NCBI RefSeq assembly: GCF_000143415.4
Contig: NW_003314623.1
Coordinates: 1 to 9,306 of the forward strand
Reading direction: 5' to 3'
DNA from: Selaginella moellendorffii
Taxonomy: Eukaryota > Plantae > Lycopodiophyta
Length of the DNA: 9,306 bases
Positions 1 to 9,306 of the stretch are shown here, piece after piece (the first letter of the stretch is position 1; the number at the start of each line of letters is the position of its first letter). The position numbers and the translations under genes are program-made. The notes under the pieces are model-generated. The model worked only from the letters and a program-made list of their open reading frames with translations, was not told the origin of the DNA and made no database searches.

Positions 1-3
1 CAA

Positions 4-14
4 CTCCACCACCC
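4..14 (-). promoter_or_regulatory. Probable polypurine tract followed by TG (possible start of the 3' LTR at 2..1)
   Basis: Minus strand reads GGGTGGTGGAG-T-TG at the window edge. An alternative candidate is AAGTGGGGGGA-TG at 89-99. Confidence 0.45.
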
Positions 15-191
15 ATAGAAGATTGCGATGCCCACATCGAACGTCTCTCTTTTGATCCTACGACTTGTTGACCATGTCTCCAGGGGCATCCCCCCACTTA
101 GTGGTGTGCCTAAGTTAGCCTCCCTGGCCAAGAGCTCATGATAACGGAATATAGGTGTCCCTGTACTCCCCACCTCACCATGCCCTAGTAT

Positions 192-250
192 GGGGTCGGG
201 ACTCGAACCCAGCCTTGCTTTACTAGGGGGTTGGGACTCGAACCCAACCT
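192..250 (-). repeat. Two 24-nt direct repeats (35-nt period), each a tRNA T-arm/B-box-like hairpin
   Basis: Minus strand AGGTTGGG-TTCGAGT-CCCAACCCC (227-250) and AGGCTGGG-TTCGAGT-CCCGACCCC (192-215). Confidence 0.85.
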
Positions 251-448
251 CCGTAGAATACGTCTACGGATTCGACATCCCCGCAGGGAGTCGGGTGTAG
301 CTCCCTATGCCTGGTCGACCTAGTTAACCCATGCTAATTAGCTTACCTTCGGCGCGCCTTCGGGTCCCAACATATGCCACTTGCTCAACTTTGCAAATTG
401 GTATTTTTAATTGAACTTTGCATAAGTACATAGAGTTCTGCCTTGCAG

Positions 449-604
449 AAATTCCTCCACTAGATCTTGCGCGTTCGCTATGTTCTCCTCCGGTTCCCAT
501 GTTGCTTCGCAGTGTGGAAATCCTTTCCACTTCACATGGAACTCTCTCACCTCGCGTCCTTGTCGCTTGCTCTTGTGCGCATTGAGGATGGCCTCGACTT
601 CGTA
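449..604 (-). other. Chromodomain at the integrase C-terminus (group I-like, aromatic residues Y/W/F retained)
   Basis: EYEVEAIL...FHVKWKGFPHCEATWEPEENI..AQDLVEEF in ORF 407-811. Confidence 0.93.
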
Positions 605-788
605 TTCTTCTTCCCCTTGGATAACCTTAGGTAAAGGTCTTACTTGGTCCTTGCGAAGCGGATCCTCAAAGTACGGCTTGAGTAAGTTCACGTGGAACAC
701 TAGGTGCATCTTCCCCATCTCTCGAGGAAGTCGGAGTCGGTAAGCCACTTTACCGATTCGTGCCTCAATCTCATAAGGCCCTGCGAAC

Positions 789-840
789 CTGCTTAAGGAA
801 CTCAAGATCAATTCATTTACAGGAATACATGCATTTTTAC
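789..840 (-). other. Predicted 52-nt spliceosomal intron just before the integrase GPY motif
   Basis: CAAAG|GTAAAAATGCATGTATTCCTGTAAATGAATTGATCTTGAGTTCCTTAAGCAG|GTTC. GT-AG ends, 33% GC; removal joins ORF 837-1301 to ORF 407-811 in frame, giving SRKLTQRFAGPY. Confidence 0.87.
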
Positions 841-1257
841 CTTTGGGTCAACTTTCGGCTGATCCCACTTGGTAGCCTGAGGTTCTTGGTGTTCAGCCAC
901 ACCTTCTCCCCAGCTTGGAACTCCACATCCCAATGCTTTTGGTTCGCGTACTTAGTTTGTCTTTGTTGAGCCCGTTCAAAGGAATCCCTCACTAGATTCC
1001 AAATGTTGAGTCTTTCCGCCGTGAATGCCTTAACTGCGGGTAACTCTCCATGATACTCGGCCATGCTGAGTTCCACAGGACCTTCAATAGCTCGCCCATT
1101 GATGACTTCCCATGGACTCACCCCAATGCTCGAATGTGGTGAGTTGTTATAACACATTTCCGCAAGTCCCAAATGACTTACCCAGTCGGTCTGGTCTCCC
1201 GAGACATAGCATCGCAAATAATCCTCCAGCTGCCTATTCACCTTTCCGTTTGTCCGT

Positions 1258-1304
1258 CTGTCAAGAAGTGTTAGTGCCATCAATCTTGACTTAATACCCA
1301 TTAC
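1258..1304 (-). other. Predicted 47-nt spliceosomal intron in the integrase core
   Basis: ACAG|GTAATGGGTATTAAGTCAAGATTGATGGCACTAACACTTCTTGACAG|AC. GT-AG ends, CACTAAC branch motif (1270-1276), 38% GC, in-frame TAA; removal rebuilds HPQT-D-GQTER. Confidence 0.82.
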
Positions 1305-2046
1305 CTGTTTGTGGGTGATAGGCTGTGCTGAATTTCAACTTGGTGCGATACTGTTTTAGGAGTGTCCTCCAGAACCTACTGGTGAAGATCTTATCTCGAT
1401 CTGAGATAATCTCTTCCGGCCTTCCCCGCACTCAAACCACTTGTTCGAAGAACAGCTTCGTCACACCTTCCGCATCCACTTCCGTTGTGGTGGGTATGAA
1501 ATGTGCCATCTTTGAAAATCGGTCCACCACCATGAATATCGCATCGAACCCCTCACTTGGGGGTAGTCCCATGATGAAGTCTATCGTGAGACATTTCCAT
1601 GGACGATCTGGAATGGGGATGCTTTGCAACAAGCCCCCACTAGCCTTCGTCACGGCTTTGACCTGCTGACATGTTGGATATGTCTTTACATAGTCTTGGA
1701 CGTCCTTAGCCATATCTGGCCAGTGATACTTCCTTTTGAGTAAGCCCATCGTCTTGGGCACTCCGCCGTGTCCCGCGAGAGGTCCGTCATGACACTCTTC
1801 CAAGGCTACCTTCCTTAGTTCCCCTTCTGGAACATACACCCTCGTTTGCTTGTAATATATGAGTCCGTTGCGTTCCGCATAGCCCGTTTTCTCTTCCGTT
1901 GGCAGCTCACCTCTCTGGTGAGCTTCCCGCGCCTCTAGATTCCTCAGCAACACTTCTTGTGCTACACCATCGTTCTCATATGCTATCCGCACATCGTCCC
2001 AGAAGGTTGTTGTTGCGCTGGATATCGCCAACCTCAAGCTCGCTTT

Positions 2047-2390
2047 TCAACTTAGCGCATCTGCCATGATGTTGCTCTTCCCAGGCTTATACAAAATCTC
2101 ACAATCAAACTCGGCCAAGGCATTGGCCCACCGACCTTGTTTCCCTCTTAGGTCAGGCTGTGACAAGAAGTGTTTCGTTGCCACATTGTCCGTGTAAACC
2201 TTGAAGTGTCTCCCAAGGTAGTGTCGCCACTCCTTGAGCGCCTTGACCACCGCAAACAATTCCTTCTCGTGGGCAGGCCACTTCCGTTGAGCCTTGTCCA
2301 ACTTCTTCGAGAAGAACGCTACTGGATGGTTGTCTTGCTTCAAAACTGCGCCCAACGCAAAGTCCAAAGCATCCGTGTCTACCTCAAAGT
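2047..2390 (-). pseudogene. RNase H domain (Ty3/Gypsy type)
   Basis: [53 protein letters not shown]. Confidence 0.95.
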
Positions 2391-2659
2391 CCTTACCAAA
2401 ATCTGGTAATGCCAACACCGGAGCCTTCCTCAACTTCCCTTTGAGGTGGACGAATGCCGCCTCGCATTCTGCTGTCCATACCATCTTCCCTTTTCCTGTT
2501 TGGTCCGTTAAGGGTAGGGCTACTCTCGAATAGTGTCTGATAAACTTTTGATAGTAGTTGCATAGCCCCAAGAACGCCCTCAACTCATGTACATTTGAAG
2601 GTCGCTCCCATTCCTGGATCGCTTGGACCTTCTCCGGGTCCACCTTGAGCCCGTCCTGG

Positions 2660-3200
2660 CCCACCACATGCCCGAGAAACTTTACCTCTTGTTGAGCAAA
2701 GTCACATTTGCTCTCTTTAGCATATAGTTTGTGTTCCCTTAGTTTCTCAAACACCTTCACCAAGTGTTCGGCATGCTCCTCTAGCGTCTCACTATAGATC
2801 AGGATGTTGTCGATATAGACGACCACGAAGTGATCCAGATAGGGTACAAAGATGTGGTTCATTAGCACTGAAAACGTGGCCGGCGCATTGCATAGCCCAA
2901 AGGGCATCACCAAAAACTCAAAGCTCCCATACCTCGTTCGACAAGTTGTCTTCTCGACATCTTCCTCGGCTACCCTGATCTGGTAGTATTCTGACCTTAG
3001 GTCAATCCTCGAGAAGTATTTTGCCTTTCCCAACCTATCGAACAAGTCCTCAATCCTTGGCAAAGGGTACTTGTTCTTCTTTGTATACTTGTTGAGCAAC
3101 CGGTAGTCTATGCACATGCGCATAGAACCATCTTTCTTTTTCACAAATAACACCGGCGCCCCATACGGCGACTTGCTCAACCTAACATACCCTTTGTCCA
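2660..3200 (-). pseudogene. Gypsy reverse transcriptase domain (approximate bounds; catalytic YIDD altered to YIDN)
   Basis: [59 protein letters not shown] (YIDN at 2806-2817), FLGHVV. Confidence 0.97.
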
Positions 3201-3583
3201 CCAACTCCTCTAGTTGGCTCTTGAGCTCCTTGAGTTCTTTTTCGTTCAAACGATAGGTGGGACAAACTACTGCCTCAGCACCCTTGACCAGCTCAATCTT
3301 ATGTTCTATCGATCGTGCGGGGGGCAACCCCGCCAGTAGCTCCTCCAGCATGGTATCCTGGAATTGGTCCAACACCCGCTGGATCACCAAAGGTACTTCT
3401 TCCTTTCCTGTCTTTTTGTCACTCTTCACCGAGAGTAAGCACAAAAAGGCTGCCTTAGTTCCTTTGGTGAGTTGTCCTCTTGTAGACATCAGATTTAAGC
3501 AGGAATCTTTGGCCTTACTTTGCCCTACCTTTAGATCCTGGGCCTCCACCCTAGATCTTCTTCCTTGGGCATTTGCCAGTACC

Positions 3584-3683
3584 NNNNNNNNNNNNNNNNN
3601 NNNNNNNNNNNNNNNNNNNNNNNNNNNNNNNNNNNNNNNNNNNNNNNNNNNNNNNNNNNNNNNNNNNNNNNNNNNNNNNNNNN
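3584..3683. other. Assembly gap (100 N, probably a placeholder size)
   Basis: Run of N. Confidence 0.99.
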
Positions 3684-3960
3684 TTCCGAAGATCACGTCA
3701 AATCCCGCCATGTCCAACACGGTGAAATCCATGTCTACTTTCCATGTCCCTACTTCGACTCTCGCTTGTCAAAGTACCTCATCGGTGCTTTGGCTACCTT
3801 GAACAAACTCTGTAGTCCTTGGTTCGCCTAGCCGCTGCACCGTTAGTCCGGCTTGCCGGACTATGTTTGCAGCCACAAAATTATCCGAAGCACCCGTGTC
3901 AATAAGGATCTTAACAAAGCTGCCTCTGAGCTTCCCTCGGAGGGCTAGTAGATGTCGCGA
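3684..3960 (-). pseudogene. Aspartic protease domain (approximate bounds)
   Basis: ILIDTGASDNFV active site (DTGA at 3889-3900) and C-terminal FDVIFG motif; in-frame TGA at 3769-3771. Confidence 0.9.
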
Positions 3961-4083
3961 ACGACTCTTTACCAAAGTTGCTCGTGTAATGAGTAACTTT
4001 GAGTTAGGGACTAGATCACATACCTCAGTTTGGACTTCACCCGACTTGATGGCCATATTGGCTCTGGCCTTCTTCGGGTAGGG

Positions 4084-5223
4084 ACATTCCCTCGAAAAGT
4101 GTCCCGCTTCACCGCAGTTGTAGCATACGTTGTTTCCCACGCTGCTAAACGACTTGACCTTTTTATCTGTGGGTTTGTCTCTTTTCGCTTGACTTCCCCA
4201 CGTACTCGCTCGCTGGTCACCGGATTTGCCTTTCCGGAACCCCGAGGACTCATTCTTAGAGAAACTCTTCTTGAATTTCCCCTTGCTATATGTTCCCCTC
4301 GGTTTGGCCCCTTTGTGAAACGTGGATCCCGACCCTGTCGTGTTCCCCTTTCGCAGGTTATCGTTGAAATGCACCTTGATGGCCGCATCTAACGCTTCCT
4401 TGTAGTTGGTCGGGTTTCAGCGCATCACCTCACCGCGAGCCCAGGTTTGCAAACCTGATATAAAGGCATGGAACGCATCCATATCCCCCATGTCCGTGAC
4501 AAGTATCCTCTTTGCCATGAACCCATTCACATATTCTTGGATGGTTCCAATCTGCTTCAGCCTACTCAGCTCATCTCTCAGATGCAGAGTGGCATTCGGA
4601 GGAACGTATGTTGCGCGGATCCTCGCCTTCATCATGTCCCAAGTGGCCACCGGTCCTTCGTTGGCTTCTGTTGTTCTCCACCAAGACTTGGCATTATCTG
4701 CCAAGTATGGTTTCGCACATGGGACCTTCTCCGAGCTCGGTAACCGCAACGCTCGGAAGTAGTCCTCCATATCGTAAAACCAATCCTCCACAACCTTATA
4801 GTCGTTCACTCCCTTGAACACCGGTGGGGGCTTTGGTTTGTACTTGGGAACTGCCTGAGGGACTGATTCCACTTCGGTCTGTTCGACCTTGTCTGGTTTT
4901 GCCTCAGTCCCTGCCGAAGGGTCCACACCTTCTGCGCTGCCAGCATCCGCAGTCTTTCGCTTTTTCTTCCGCTTCTCGTCACGCTTTAACTTGCATACGA
5001 GAGTCTCTAGCAGGGCATTGGTCTGTGCCAACTGTCCTTCTAGCACGTCCAATCGAGCCTTGGACGACAGAACCTCGCCACCGGACTCCTGTTTGGAAGT
5101 TTCCTCACTGGAGTCCTCCTCATGCAAGGATTCCTCATCCATAGCCTCTTGTTCAACCGGAGGCTCCAGCTCTGGCGGAGGTTCCGTCTCCGCCTAGGTT
5201 CGCTTACACCCTGCCCTTGCCAT
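4084..5223 (-). pseudogene. gag: Gag (retrotransposon gag/capsid domain plus CCHC nucleocapsid knuckle)
   Basis: KPPPVFKG..VEDWFYDMEDYF..YLADNAKSWW..TWD..LRDELSRLKQIGTIQEYVNGF..FISGL is typical retrotrans_gag. CYNCGEAGHFSREC (CX2CX4HX4C) lies at 4084-4125. Confidence 0.9.
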
Positions 5224-5256
5224 CTCCCAGCAATCCGCCTCTATCCTTCGCTACAA

Positions 5257-5322
5257 CTGAGGAAAAGGCTCCGATACCAAATTGTAAGCCACAAATTTTT
5301 CCTTTCCAATTTGCTAACTTAC
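5257..5322 (-). other. Candidate 66-nt 5' leader intron spanning the LTR terminus and PBS
   Basis: GAG|GTAAGT consensus donor (5317-5322), CTTAC branch-like motif at the LTR end, CCTTTTCCTCAG acceptor ending 5257, 38% GC. Non-coding, so no reading-frame test is possible. Confidence 0.6.
5267..5279 (-). promoter_or_regulatory. Primer binding site for tRNA-iMet
   Basis: TGGTATCGGAGCC versus canonical TGGTATCAGAGCC (one A>G, allowing G:U pairing), separated by ATT from the LTR end ...GGCTTACA. Confidence 0.9.
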
Positions 5323-5860
5323 CTCGTCTATCCGTCCGACACTGCCTTGGCTTTTGCTAAGTTCCCTCGCCAAGGTTCTCGCCTATGGTACTAACTCCTT
5401 ACTTGGTCCTACTTGCTTTCAGCTACTCACTACACGAGCAACGGAGCATTAGCCATCCATCCTCGGATTCCCAATTCTCTCCCAATCCCCCTCCCCGGGT
5501 TAGACTAGACTTAAGGTTCGGCTACACTCCCTGCAGGCACAAGCAGTCAAACACATCAAGCCTCCAGGTTCCTAACACCCCTTGGTACAACAAGACTTGA
5601 TCATGGGACCCTCTAAATCCCAAGCCTTGGGTGCAGCACTTGCTTCGGGACGTCAGGGCGAAACACCGTGGCCTAACGGCCCGGTATGGGTACCTCTAGC
5701 CTGCCATTTCCATCCTGAAGGAAGGCCCATGCCCCTAGGCAGGGCGAGGACCAATGAGCCGCATGGTACTCAAGTGAGGCACCACTCCACATGAGCCGGG
5801 AGCACCGCAATCGGTTTCCCTTTCGGGAGTGGGAGCTGCTCTTGAGCACTTCCTTGGATG
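5283..5860 (-). repeat. 5' LTR of the Gypsy element (partial; upstream part lost in the N gap)
   Basis: Non-coding segment ending in ...TTACA directly before the PBS. No second copy is in the window to confirm its extent. Confidence 0.75.
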
Positions 5861-6387
5861 NNNNNNNNNNNNNNNNNNNNNNNNNNNNNNNNNNNNNNNN
5901 NNNNNNNNNNNNNNNNNNNNNNNNNNNNNNNNNNNNNNNNNNNNNNNNNNNNNNNNNNNNNNNNNNNNNNNNNNNNNNNNNNNNNNNNNNNNNNNNNNNN
6001 NNNNNNNNNNNNNNNNNNNNNNNNNNNNNNNNNNNNNNNNNNNNNNNNNNNNNNNNNNNNNNNNNNNNNNNNNNNNNNNNNNNNNNNNNNNNNNNNNNNN
6101 NNNNNNNNNNNNNNNNNNNNNNNNNNNNNNNNNNNNNNNNNNNNNNNNNNNNNNNNNNNNNNNNNNNNNNNNNNNNNNNNNNNNNNNNNNNNNNNNNNNN
6201 NNNNNNNNNNNNNNNNNNNNNNNNNNNNNNNNNNNNNNNNNNNNNNNNNNNNNNNNNNNNNNNNNNNNNNNNNNNNNNNNNNNNNNNNNNNNNNNNNNNN
6301 NNNNNNNNNNNNNNNNNNNNNNNNNNNNNNNNNNNNNNNNNNNNNNNNNNNNNNNNNNNNNNNNNNNNNNNNNNNNNNNNNNNNNNN
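5861..6387. other. Assembly gap (527 N) hiding the Gypsy/Copia junction
   Basis: Run of N. Confidence 0.99.
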
Positions 6388-7330
6388 GTTGGTGATGTGT
6401 TGTATTGACTCAAGGCAATAGTAGCATATGTGGGGCGAGTCATCAATGCCAAATATGTGAGGCAACCAATGAGATGCCGATAGGGAGTCCCAGTGGGTAG
6501 AGGCTCACCAGACTGCTCAACTGTGAGGTCGATAGCACCAACGACCATCGGGGTCTTGACGGGGTGGCAATCACGCATACCAAACCGATCCAGCAAGACT
6601 TCGACTTTACATCGTTGGCTGCATGTAGCCACCAGACTCAACGTGTGACTTCAAAGCCAAGAAAGTAGGAGACTTGGCCAAGGTCCTTCATCTGGAATTG
6701 CTGGCTGAGAGCAGCTTTCAGAGCAGCAATGGCATCGGTGTCATCACCCATGATGAGCAAATCATCAACATAGAGGGCCACAATAAGCATGTGCTCAGCA
6801 TGACCATTCACATACACATTGTGATCAGCATGACAGTGACGAAAGCCTTGAGCGCGTAGGGTGGCATCAAATTTTTGATACCAAATACAGGAGCTCTGTT
6901 TTAGGCCATACAAAGCTTTCCGCAATTGCCATATAGGGCCACCAAGGGCAACATCGTCCTCAAAACCAGGAGGTATATGCATATAGATGTCCTCTTGCAA
7001 ATCCCCATTCAAAAATGCAGTTTTGACGTCCATATGGTGGACTTGCCATTTGTGAGCAGCTGCAAGTGCAAAAAGAGTACGGAGGTTGGCCATTTTTACA
7101 ACTGGTGAGAATGTTTCATTGTAGTCAAGGCCATGGACTTGGCGAAAACCATGAACAACCAACCGTGCCTTATAACATACAACCTGACCATCTTTCCCAT
7201 ACTTTTTGGAAAAAATCCATTTTGGATCCAAAACACGTCATCCCAATGGCGCTGAATCAATTGGAACATAAGTTCCGTTAACCTGAATGGAAGAAACTTC
7301 TTCCGCAATAGCTTCCATCCAAGATGAAGC
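6388..7330 (-). pseudogene. Copia reverse transcriptase (RVT_2-type), cut by the gap before RNase H
   Basis: WMEAIAEE, YKARLV, DYNETFSPV, MDVKTAFLNG, LYGLKQ, LYVDDLLI, MKDLG..FLG, YRHLIGCLTYL..TRP. Confidence 0.96.
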
Positions 7331-7618
7331 CTCAGGTCCTGAGACGGCCTCATCATAGGTCATGGAGATGCTGACGTCAACAAGGACACAAAAGTCATCA
7401 AGCTTTGCAGCATCTGCTTCAGCATTTTCCCAGACTTTCAACGAGGGCCGACGTTCCCGGGGGTGATCAAGAACTGGCATCGGATCAGGCATGCCATGAC
7501 GTCGACAAGGTGGTGGAGGTGTTGGAGGCCTGTCCTCGACTGGAGGAGCATCAGCTGGTTCAAGCATGTCTAGAAGTGGAGGATTCCCTAGTGGAATCTC
7601 TGGTGGCAACTCATGAAT

Positions 7619-7788
7619 AGGATCTTGAGGTGGAGGCAAGAGTGGACCATCTCCCATAAGTGGATCAAAGGAACAAGTCAAGTCTCAGCAATGAAAGAAG
7701 GATCTTGAGGCAGAGGCAAGAGTGGACCATTTCCCATAAGTGGATCAAAGGAACAAGTCGAGTCTCAGCAATGAAAGAAGGATCTTGA
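7619..7788. repeat. 80-bp tandem duplication in the Copia IN-RT spacer
   Basis: Units start at 7621 and 7701 (gatcttgagg...atgaaagaag) with a partial third at 7781; 4 mismatches in 80. Confidence 0.95.
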
Positions 7789-7829
7789 AGAGCCTTTGTA
7801 CGCATGGGAAAGTCGTCTTCATTGAACAT

Positions 7830-8720
7830 GACATCTGTGCTTACAAGAGCCTTGTGAGATGCAAGATCCCATAATTTGTAAGTTTTTCTCCCGATGGTGT
7901 CGTCCTGTGCATATCCAGATGAATTTTTTACTTTTGGGATTTAGCTTTTTCCGAAGTTGATCAGGGGTATGTGAATATGCTGCACAACTGAAGACTTGAA
8001 AGTGGGACACATTAGGAGTAGAACCTGTCCAAAATGCCTCAAGGGTTTTTCCATCCAAAGCAGCCGTGGCAAGGCAATTTTGTACATGCATTGCTGTGGC
8101 TATAGCCTCTTGCCAAAACATCTTGTCAAGATGTGCATCAGCTAACAAAGTGTGAGCATCAGCTAACAAAATGTGAGCAGCATTAACAAGAGTGCGATTC
8201 TTCCTTTCTACAACACCATTTTGCTGGGGGGTGTAGCGGGCTGTGGCTTGCAGTTGTATGCTTACATCATGACAGATGCCCCGAAGATCATTGTTGAGGT
8301 ATTCACCACCACCATCAACTTGAAGAGATTTTATCTTTCGACCAAGGAGGTTTTCAACATAGGCCTTGTACGTTTGAAAGGCAACAACTGCATCACTTTT
8401 ACGCATCAAGAAGTGGATGCATGTTCGACGGCTATAGTCATCAATAAATGTGATGAAATATCTTGCCCCATTGTGACTTGGCACGTCCATGGGGCCGCAA
8501 AGATCAGAATGGACCAATTCCAGAAGTTAAGTGCTCGATGCTTACTCGGCGAGAAATTCTGACGGTGATGCTTGCCTAAAATGCAAGCTTCACAAAATGT
8601 AGATGGGATACGTCGGAAATCCAATCCAGTAACAATATCTTGGGATTTCATCCGTTGAAGAGATTGGTAATGAACATGACCAAGTCTTTTATGCCAAAGC
8701 TCCGCACAAGAATCTGCCTC
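7830..8720 (-). pseudogene. Copia GAG-pre-integrase plus integrase core (approximate bounds)
   Basis: AELWHKRLGH, FCEACILGKHHR, VHSDLCGP, FIDDYSR, VDGGGEY, TPQQNGVVERKNRTL, FWQEA, RKKLNPKS. Confidence 0.94.
8135..8179. repeat. 21-bp in-frame tandem duplication in the Copia integrase
   Basis: gcatcagctaacaaagtgtga / gcatcagctaacaaaatgtga; translates as AHILLAD-AHTLLAD. Confidence 0.92.
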
Positions 8721-9306
8721 CACAGTCTGAAAGGCTTGAACCGGGTCAGCAGCAATAATCTCATACAAGTCCCCAATGCATGACCCACGAAGCAATTGTG
8801 TCCCAAGCATATAAAAGTTGCTAGAGTCAACCAAAGAGACTCCCTTTGCATCAAAGATTACCACTACATTTTGATCATATATCTTGGCGACAGACATTAA
8901 GTTTCGTCGCAAAGTGGAAACGCGCATGGCACCATCAAAGGCTATGGTCCTCCCATGATCAAGTGAGAGCCAAAATTGCCCAATGCCTTCTACGGGATAA
9001 TGGTATTGTCACCTAAATGAACACCATGTTTTCCAATACTTGGCTGATAACACTCAAAAAGACTCTTCTTATTGCTCATAAGATTAATACAACCAAAGTC
9101 TAAGAGCCACCGGCTTGGTGCTGCAATTGCCTCTGCGTTGTAGAGCTCCTCAGCAGCCTCATTTGCTGTAGCAATTCCATCATGCTCGAGTAGATTGGCT
9201 TTTGCCGGCGTAGCTAGTCGCTTGACAGGCTTGGGAGCAAGGCAATCTCGAGCCCAGTGGCCCATCTCCAAGCAGCGAGCACACTGATTCTTAGCAAGTC
9301 TGGGCT

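Follow-up and report, generated by a model that had tools for sequence, protein, structure and literature searches.

A 9,306-nucleotide (nt) stretch of the Selaginella moellendorffii genome (contig NW_003314623.1, positions 1 to 9,306; hereafter the window, meaning the whole of this stretch) carries on its minus strand, from 1 to 5860, a single Ty3/gypsy chromovirus with a long terminal repeat (LTR) end, primer binding site (PBS), gag, protease, reverse transcriptase (RT), RNase H, integrase and chromodomain. Two short inserts, one of 47 and one of 52 nt, interrupt its integrase. By sequence they are extra DNA with the hallmarks of U2-type spliceosomal introns, and only when both are removed does a complete integrase-chromodomain become readable. 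We suggest, with slightly less than even confidence, that this is an arrangement like that of the legume element Ogre in the setting of a chromovirus, in which unspliced RNA was copied and full integrase came from spliced RNA only.

The first insert lies at 1258..1304 (minus strand 1304..1258, 47 nt, GTAATGGGTATTAAGTCAAGATTGATGGCACTAACACTTCTTGACAG) and the second at 789..840 (minus strand 840..789, 52 nt, GTAAAAATGCATGTATTCCTGTAAATGAATTGATCTTGAGTTCCTTAAGCAG). An earlier note on this DNA, drawn up from the letters alone, had picked out these two and a third segment of 66 nt in the leader as short, AT-rich GT-AG segments in the element's sense orientation, and its coordinates, lengths and description of all three are correct (GC content 0.38, 0.33 and 0.38 for the 47-, 52- and 66-nt segments, against 0.50 in coding sequence). 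For the two integrase inserts, coding windows of the same length have a GC content of 0.50 ± 0.06, and 3% of these are as AT-rich as the 47-nt insert and 0% as the 52-nt insert. In the element's sense, each insert begins with GT and closes with AG, and each occupies a MAG|R site that resembles a proto-splice site: CAG|AC in phase 1 for the 47-nt insert and AAG|GT in phase 2 for the 52-nt insert. The former reads GTAATG...CACTAAC...GACAG, its branch-like CACTAAC lying 17 nt from the 3' end, and the latter GTAAAA...AAGCAG.

As the earlier note had also stated, both break the integrase at conserved motifs. The 47-nt insert falls just before DGQTER, a motif that is encoded by an exon piece (1239..1257, recognized by three-frame reading and local sequence) and is expected in this family to carry the catalytic glutamate; the 52-nt insert falls within the SH3-like C-terminal domain. 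With the 47-nt insert taken out, the reading passes from frame 0 into frame 1 and ...STAYHPQT continues directly as DGQTER (HPQT|DGQTER); with the 52-nt insert taken out, it passes from frame 2 into frame 1 and ...RKLTQR continues as FAGPYEIEARIG (KLTQR|FAGPYEI), across a junction that lies inside Pfam SH3_Tf2-1 at profile position 23/24. Reading on into the 47-nt insert leads to a stop after 4 codons, and into the 52-nt insert after 1 codon, in line with the claim of the earlier note that the complete integrase would be readable only without them. The inserts have no similarity to each other, to the rest of the window or to the three related loci that we retrieved (L001-L003), they share no 11-mers elsewhere beyond chance, and the repeats at their flanks are those of the splice consensus only (ACAG; AG|GT). 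On this comparison, filler DNA copied from nearby and a shared introner family are unsupported as sources. By our own estimate, it is very improbable that two unrelated random insertions of ~50 nt would have all of these features by chance.

The copy that carries the inserts is dead, and its damage appears to be of a simple methylation-decay kind. From gag to the integrase core there is one reading frame with four in-frame stops, all of them TGA (4417-4419, 3769-3771, 2047-2049 and 1432-1434). Besides the two inserts, the open reading frame (ORF) is broken only by these stops and by a 1-nt deletion near 1239, which shifts the frame between DGQTER and VNRQLEDYL. The RT motif reads YIDN instead of YxDD (2806-2817), and the ratio of observed to expected CpG is 0.74. 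At the place of the stop at 3769-3771, L003, a contig of the same family that is described below, has CAA. The all-TGA pattern fits CpG deamination on either strand, and not random decay. Reading in-frame TGA as a sense codon was rejected, since TAA terminates the ORF and the pattern is as expected from CpG deamination. We also looked by eye for another acceptor that could bypass the frameshift after DGQTER, and no AG gives the correct frame. Because the decay of the ORF is of this simple methylation type, the progenitor probably had an ORF that was intact once both inserts were removed.

Reverse transcription of spliced RNA should purge introns. Both inserts would have been in the RNA template that was reverse-transcribed into the present copy, because the gain of two such inserts after integration in one dead copy is very unlikely. 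Less certainly, they may have belonged to a replicating lineage that was copied from unspliced RNA, as retroviruses and Ogre are. Unspliced RNA would then encode Gag, protease, RT and RNase H together with an integrase truncated before the catalytic glutamate, and an integrase of full length, SH3-like domain and chromodomain included, would come only from RNA that had been spliced at both inserts. The splice donors of the two inserts, GTAATG and GTAAAA, are non-consensus, as would fit leaky, partial splicing. The fuller form of this proposal is a chromovirus lineage that stably carries two integrase introns, in which host splicing decides on complete integrase and unspliced RNA is copied, the introns having perhaps arrived by reverse splicing into genomic RNA; toward this form we are more reserved, and lean modestly against it. 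The earlier note had concluded that host splicing gates transposition, a statement that would concern an ancestor, because the copy itself is dead.

Several points weigh against an inherited, spliced arrangement. To begin with, the closest relatives (55-61% amino acid identity) have neither insert. P0119, an 871-amino-acid ORF on a 3-kb contig, matches 3255-1306, 1244-840 and 790-560 in tblastn with its own residues contiguous; L001 and L002 run in a single frame through both insert sites with no extra DNA; and P0272, the closest full-length relative, is a single uninterrupted ORF of 1578 amino acids that is collinear with all seven pieces of the chromovirus. Further intronless homologues in the tblastn comparison are likewise collinear across both sites. 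The intron trait would therefore be at most family-specific, and ancient shared introns were rejected, as all four relatives are uninterrupted at both sites. Moreover, a single copy with inserts is known, and it is a dead one. The branch site of the 52-nt insert is only a loose YTNAY match. It is also hard to see why the introns would persist, as spliced RNA that retained the leader would be packageable and would give rise to intronless, fully competent copies, so that retention needs an unexplained bias toward unspliced RNA. Finally, a length of 47-52 nt would fall below what introns of seed plants require. As a lead, introns in Selaginella have been reported to be shorter than those of Arabidopsis genes (PMC3095285).

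The search for sister copies adds to these points, as no sibling covering the integrase was found by protein, pattern or exact-20-mer searches. The protein homologue search with RT-RNase H reached a best identity of 61% and returned no sibling copy, and the exon between the inserts gave no candidate as a query, the best match in the representative set having 46% identity. Scans with back-translated patterns of genome, viral and metagenome contigs found no related locus, and exact scans of all three collections for the family's 20-mer from the LTR end and PBS found no match. The search for gag homologues did give one match, P0121 (74%), which is located on Logan contig L003 (ERR10900155_11727); a look-up with another ORF of L003 led back to the same contig only.

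L003 has 79% DNA identity to the window over LTR, leader and gag, and covers LTR, gag, protease and part of RT only. It starts (1-23) with GCAGTGGTATCAACGCAGAGTAC, presumably the SMART cDNA primer; the ERR10900155 run is probably cDNA and L003 a transcript through transposon-rich DNA, and the chromovirus family is probably transcribed, at least by read-through. Sites with G or C in the window and A or T in L003 number 471, against 81 in the reverse direction, and the rate of C>T/G>A change in L003 relative to the window is 50% at CpG, 26-29% at CA/CT and 17% at CC. These differences look like a plant-type pattern of methylation decay, and not like CpA-biased repeat-induced point mutation (RIP). 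The contig holds two fragments of the family in opposite orientation (L003:29-1676 and L003:2238-3839), both heavily C>T/G>A mutated, with a run of short GAGTCTGAGAYC-like repeats between them at ~1750-2050.

The main rival to inheritance within a lineage is a one-off acquisition, in which host introns, once excised, entered one molecule of genomic RNA by reverse splicing, or were captured in another way during the replication cycle behind this copy, and the element's RT fixed them in a single new insertion that founded no lineage. Retrotransposon RNA is reverse-transcribed and integrated anyway, which would remove the supposed limiting step of intron gain by reverse splicing. The proto-splice sites at both inserts (CAG|A and AAG|G), the lack of any relationship between the inserts, the window and the fetched loci, and the insert-free relatives all speak for such an event. 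It would require two independent rare events on one RNA, however, and the window itself does not separate one-off capture from lineage inheritance. On balance, we consider capture of this kind unlikely.

Less likely again is that the inserts are copy-specific insertions made after integration (repair filler, small duplications or a tiny mobile element) that are intron-like by resemblance and had no role in the element. A dead copy is free to gather indels, the neighboring copia remnant contains 21-nt and 80-nt tandem duplications, and the 47-nt insert weakly resembles the 47 nt upstream of it (55% identity, raw p ~0.008). Leaving out the shared CAG raises p to ~0.05, in a set of six comparisons, so that a tandem-duplication origin of the 47-nt insert is unsupported. 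Furthermore, there is no other copy of either insert in the window, and chance resemblance would have to account for GT..AG ends in sense, extended GTAA donors, proto-splice flanks and a strong AT bias in both inserts. Inserts of this kind are absent from the copia remnant, whose decay is no less advanced. We also rejected a genome-wide tendency of transposons to carry intron-like inserts, since that adjacent remnant has 1-nt frameshifts and tandem duplications only.

The weakest of the competing accounts is the three-intron form of the splicing gate that the earlier note had put forward. In this form the LTR end and PBS would be lost with a leader intron, which would leave spliced RNA fit for translation and impossible to prime, and unspliced RNA alone would be copied. 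The candidate is the AT-rich 66-nt segment GTAAGT...CCTCAG at 5257..5322 on the minus strand; its donor is a perfect GTAAGT, its acceptor is TTTTCCTCAG, and its CTTAC resembles a branch site. Its composition is distinct, with a GC content of 0.38 where the surrounding non-coding sequence averages 0.56 and does not fall below 0.455, and 0.7% of coding windows of the same length are as AT-rich. A division between translated and replicated RNA pools also has a precedent in BARE (PMC3735527).

Against these features, L003 retains the whole 66-nt block with no indel at 88% identity, compared with 79% overall, and three of its eight differences in the block hit the donor hexamer, which reads CTAATA, not GTAAGT; the donor is thus the least conserved part of a conserved block. 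The conserved core, AAATTGGAAAGGAAAAATT ... TGGCTTACAATTTGGTATCG, is as expected of a U5 end plus PBS, a function that explains the conservation. The PBS-like site TGGTATCGGAGCC (5267..5279, minus strand, by direct reading of the sequence), which we take to be of the tRNA-iMet type, lies 3 nt past the ...CA of ...CTTACA and is conserved in L003, where the corresponding letters are TGGTATCGAAGC; in L001, which is more distantly related, TGGTATCAGAGC stands immediately upstream of gag. The earlier note had held that the segment contains the LTR end plus PBS. The PBS part of that claim fits this PBS-like site, while the LTR end would be putative, as the visible parts of the LTRs do not overlap.

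Look-alikes that are equally good as GT..AG segments arise by chance on both strands of the window. A loose splice scan (GT..YAG, 40-80 nt, GC <=0.40, at least 4/6 matches to GTAAGT, and a YTNAY branch site) returned ~5 minus-strand and 4 plus-strand loci, and as a chance control there is a 67-nt segment with a perfect GTAAGT...TTTAG at 7878-7944 on the plus strand, antisense to the copia ORF. The three-intron gate would also need the splicing of three introns to be coupled on single molecules, and nothing supports coupling. A leader intron is therefore unsupported, both because L003 keeps the block with a CT donor and because look-alikes arise by chance, and as far as sequence can show, the segment is a conserved U5 end plus PBS and not an intron. 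Because its composition is unusual, the three-intron model keeps a small probability, which we would set very low. What stands of the splicing-gated model is that the two integrase inserts are intron-like.

The chromovirus identity implied in the earlier note is supported by Pfam, which places gag to chromodomain in order. Domains were called by Pfam scans on stop-free pieces of the minus strand, and the matches, in collinear pieces and one frame, give the order gag with CCHC, protease, RT, RNase H and integrase. The pieces carry Retrotrans_gag (4420-5142), the CCHC knuckle and aspartic protease (3772-4416), RVT_1 and RNase H (2050-3582), the integrase H2C2 zinc domain (1435-2046), the end of the rve core (1306-1431), and SH3_Tf2-1 with the chromodomain (410-787). 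Within them, gag (4420..5142; PF03732, E=2e-12) ends at the in-frame TGA 4417-4419 and is followed by the CCHC zinc knuckle (4081..4131; PF00098, E=2e-8) and by the aspartic protease with its DTGA motif (3684..3936; Asp_protease_2/RVP_2), which holds the TGA at 3769-3771 and enters an assembly gap of 100 N at the protease C-terminus (3584..3683). L003 has 55 nt in place of the 100 N, both lengths being 1 mod 3. Because the flanks of this gap are collinear and in the same frame, it has no effect on the intron finding.

Downstream of the gap are the RT (2665..3144; RVT_1, E=2e-37), whose active-site motif is the YIDN at 2806-2817, and RNase H (2107..2403; RT_RNaseH, E=1e-30), with the TGA at 2047-2049 just past ADALS. 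The integrase begins with its H2C2 zinc-binding domain (1654..1821; PF17921, E=9e-20) and continues through the catalytic core to ...STAYHPQT (1305..1650), which contains the TGA at 1432-1434 and is collinear with the relatives; its match to the C-terminal part of rve (E=8e-5) is below the curated cut-off, only a piece having been scored. Between the inserts, 841..1238 encodes the C-terminal part of the integrase as far as the first portion of the SH3-like domain (...RKLTQ plus the AG of a split codon) and aligns collinearly with P0119, L002 and P0272 (35-38% identity). Past the 52-nt insert follow the second part of the SH3-like domain (671..788; SH3_Tf2-1 profile positions 24-63, E=2.5e-14, and Integrase_p58_C) and, directly after SH3_Tf2-1 and fused to the integrase C-terminus, the chromodomain (446..604; Pfam Chromo, PF00385, E=1e-16; HP1 and CHD1 chromodomains in PDB, E ~1e-9). 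The ORF ends with TAA at 407-409.

At the 5' end of the element, the visible 3' part of the LTR (R/U5, 5283..5860) ends in ...CTTACA where it adjoins the PBS-like site, and has 79% identity to L003:2238-2790; a gap of 527 N at 5861-6387 cuts this LTR upstream. At the other end, a putative 3' LTR start (TGTTGG...) at 1..372 runs off the window and is placed by its position past a weak purine-rich tract downstream of the stop, the polypurine tract of this chromovirus being weak. It contains, in what would be U3, a 35-nt tandem pair at 178-247 that is 80% identical. We infer the LTR boundaries on these grounds. A comparison of 1-400 with 5250-6700 found no similarity, so the two visible LTR parts share no sequence; an LTR of more than ~950 nt, or one with part of its length in the 527-N gap, could leave them without overlap. 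Scans for tRNAs and with Rfam found nothing.

On the far side of the 527-N gap, 6388-9306 of the minus strand is an unrelated, decayed Ty1/copia remnant (CCHC, protease, integrase, and RT with YVDDLLI) that has several 1-nt frameshifts and runs into the gap. Its coding region contains two tandem duplications, one of two 80-nt units at 7619-7778 (95% identical) and one of two 21-nt units at 8132-8173 (90% identical). The chromovirus and the copia remnant stand on opposite sides of the gap, and one may be nested in the other.

If sister copies share the inserts, the chromovirus would provide a second, independent heritable intron in pol, in another lineage (the chromoviruses) and another gene (integrase), and if the inserts were inherited it would be a variant of the Ogre-type arrangement, not a separate category. 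Were the proposal true, integration, and perhaps chromodomain targeting, would be under host splicing control, and the element would offer a tractable system for asking how retroelements keep unspliced RNA for packaging and whether reverse splicing into RNA that is naturally reverse-transcribed creates introns. Introns that entered by reverse splicing would be a natural example of a long-proposed route of intron gain. If, instead, the inserts are private to a dead copy, they are a curiosity about intron-like insertions.

Among known systems, introners are likewise short insertions that bring or recruit splice signals and so create introns (PMC12130899), but they form multi-copy families with recognizable ends and target-site duplications, whereas neither insert here resembles the other or any sequence compared. 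Penelope-like elements also keep spliceosomal introns in their genomic copies, going by a title cited in PMC6431247; they are an unrelated class with a GIY-YIG endonuclease, a telomerase-like RT and no LTR/PBS cycle, and their introns are thought to be kept for other mechanistic reasons. Plant chromoviruses share with this element the layout of gag-CCHC, protease, RT, RNase H, integrase and C-terminal chromodomain in one frame, together with a PBS of the TGGTATC... type, but the described members are intronless, and in the literature searched we found no description of a chromovirus with integrase introns. Judged by eye, the chromodomain of this copy keeps an aromatic residue at each of the three positions where the cage is expected (Y..W..F); a chromodomain aromatic cage has been reported only for chromoviruses of non-seed plants (PMC6317226). 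Taken with the plant-type decay pattern seen in L003, this suggests a host in the green lineage outside the seed plants. Plant LTR retrotransposons are described as mostly without introns, besides Ogre and the cases of Gag-only splicing (PMC12786077).

Those Gag-only cases resemble the arrangement proposed here in that transcript splicing alters the proteins made, as in BARE1 (Ty1/copia, barley), EVADE and Drosophila copia (PMC3735527; EVADE in PMC12786077). BARE furthermore has separate RNA pools for translation and replication (PMC3735527), so that this aspect of the splicing-gated model is already documented. In elements of this type, however, it is the coding pol region that is removed, which raises Gag, whereas here the removed segments would be non-coding extras whose loss is needed for a complete integrase. 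The closest parallel in mechanism is Ogre (Ty3/gypsy, Tat/Ogre lineage), which has a sense-strand intron in its polyprotein ORF that is kept in genomic copies and spliced in a subset of transcripts for downstream Pol (PMC6317226, PMC12786077), so a heritable, partly spliced pol intron is likewise already documented. The chromovirus differs in having two tiny inserts (47 and 52 nt) in the integrase, with gag to the integrase core uninterrupted, and in belonging outside Ogre/Tat; and whereas the splicing of Ogre and its presence in many copies were shown by experiment, the present arrangement is known from the sequence of one copy. By analogy, the element would work like Ogre without being a member of its lineage.

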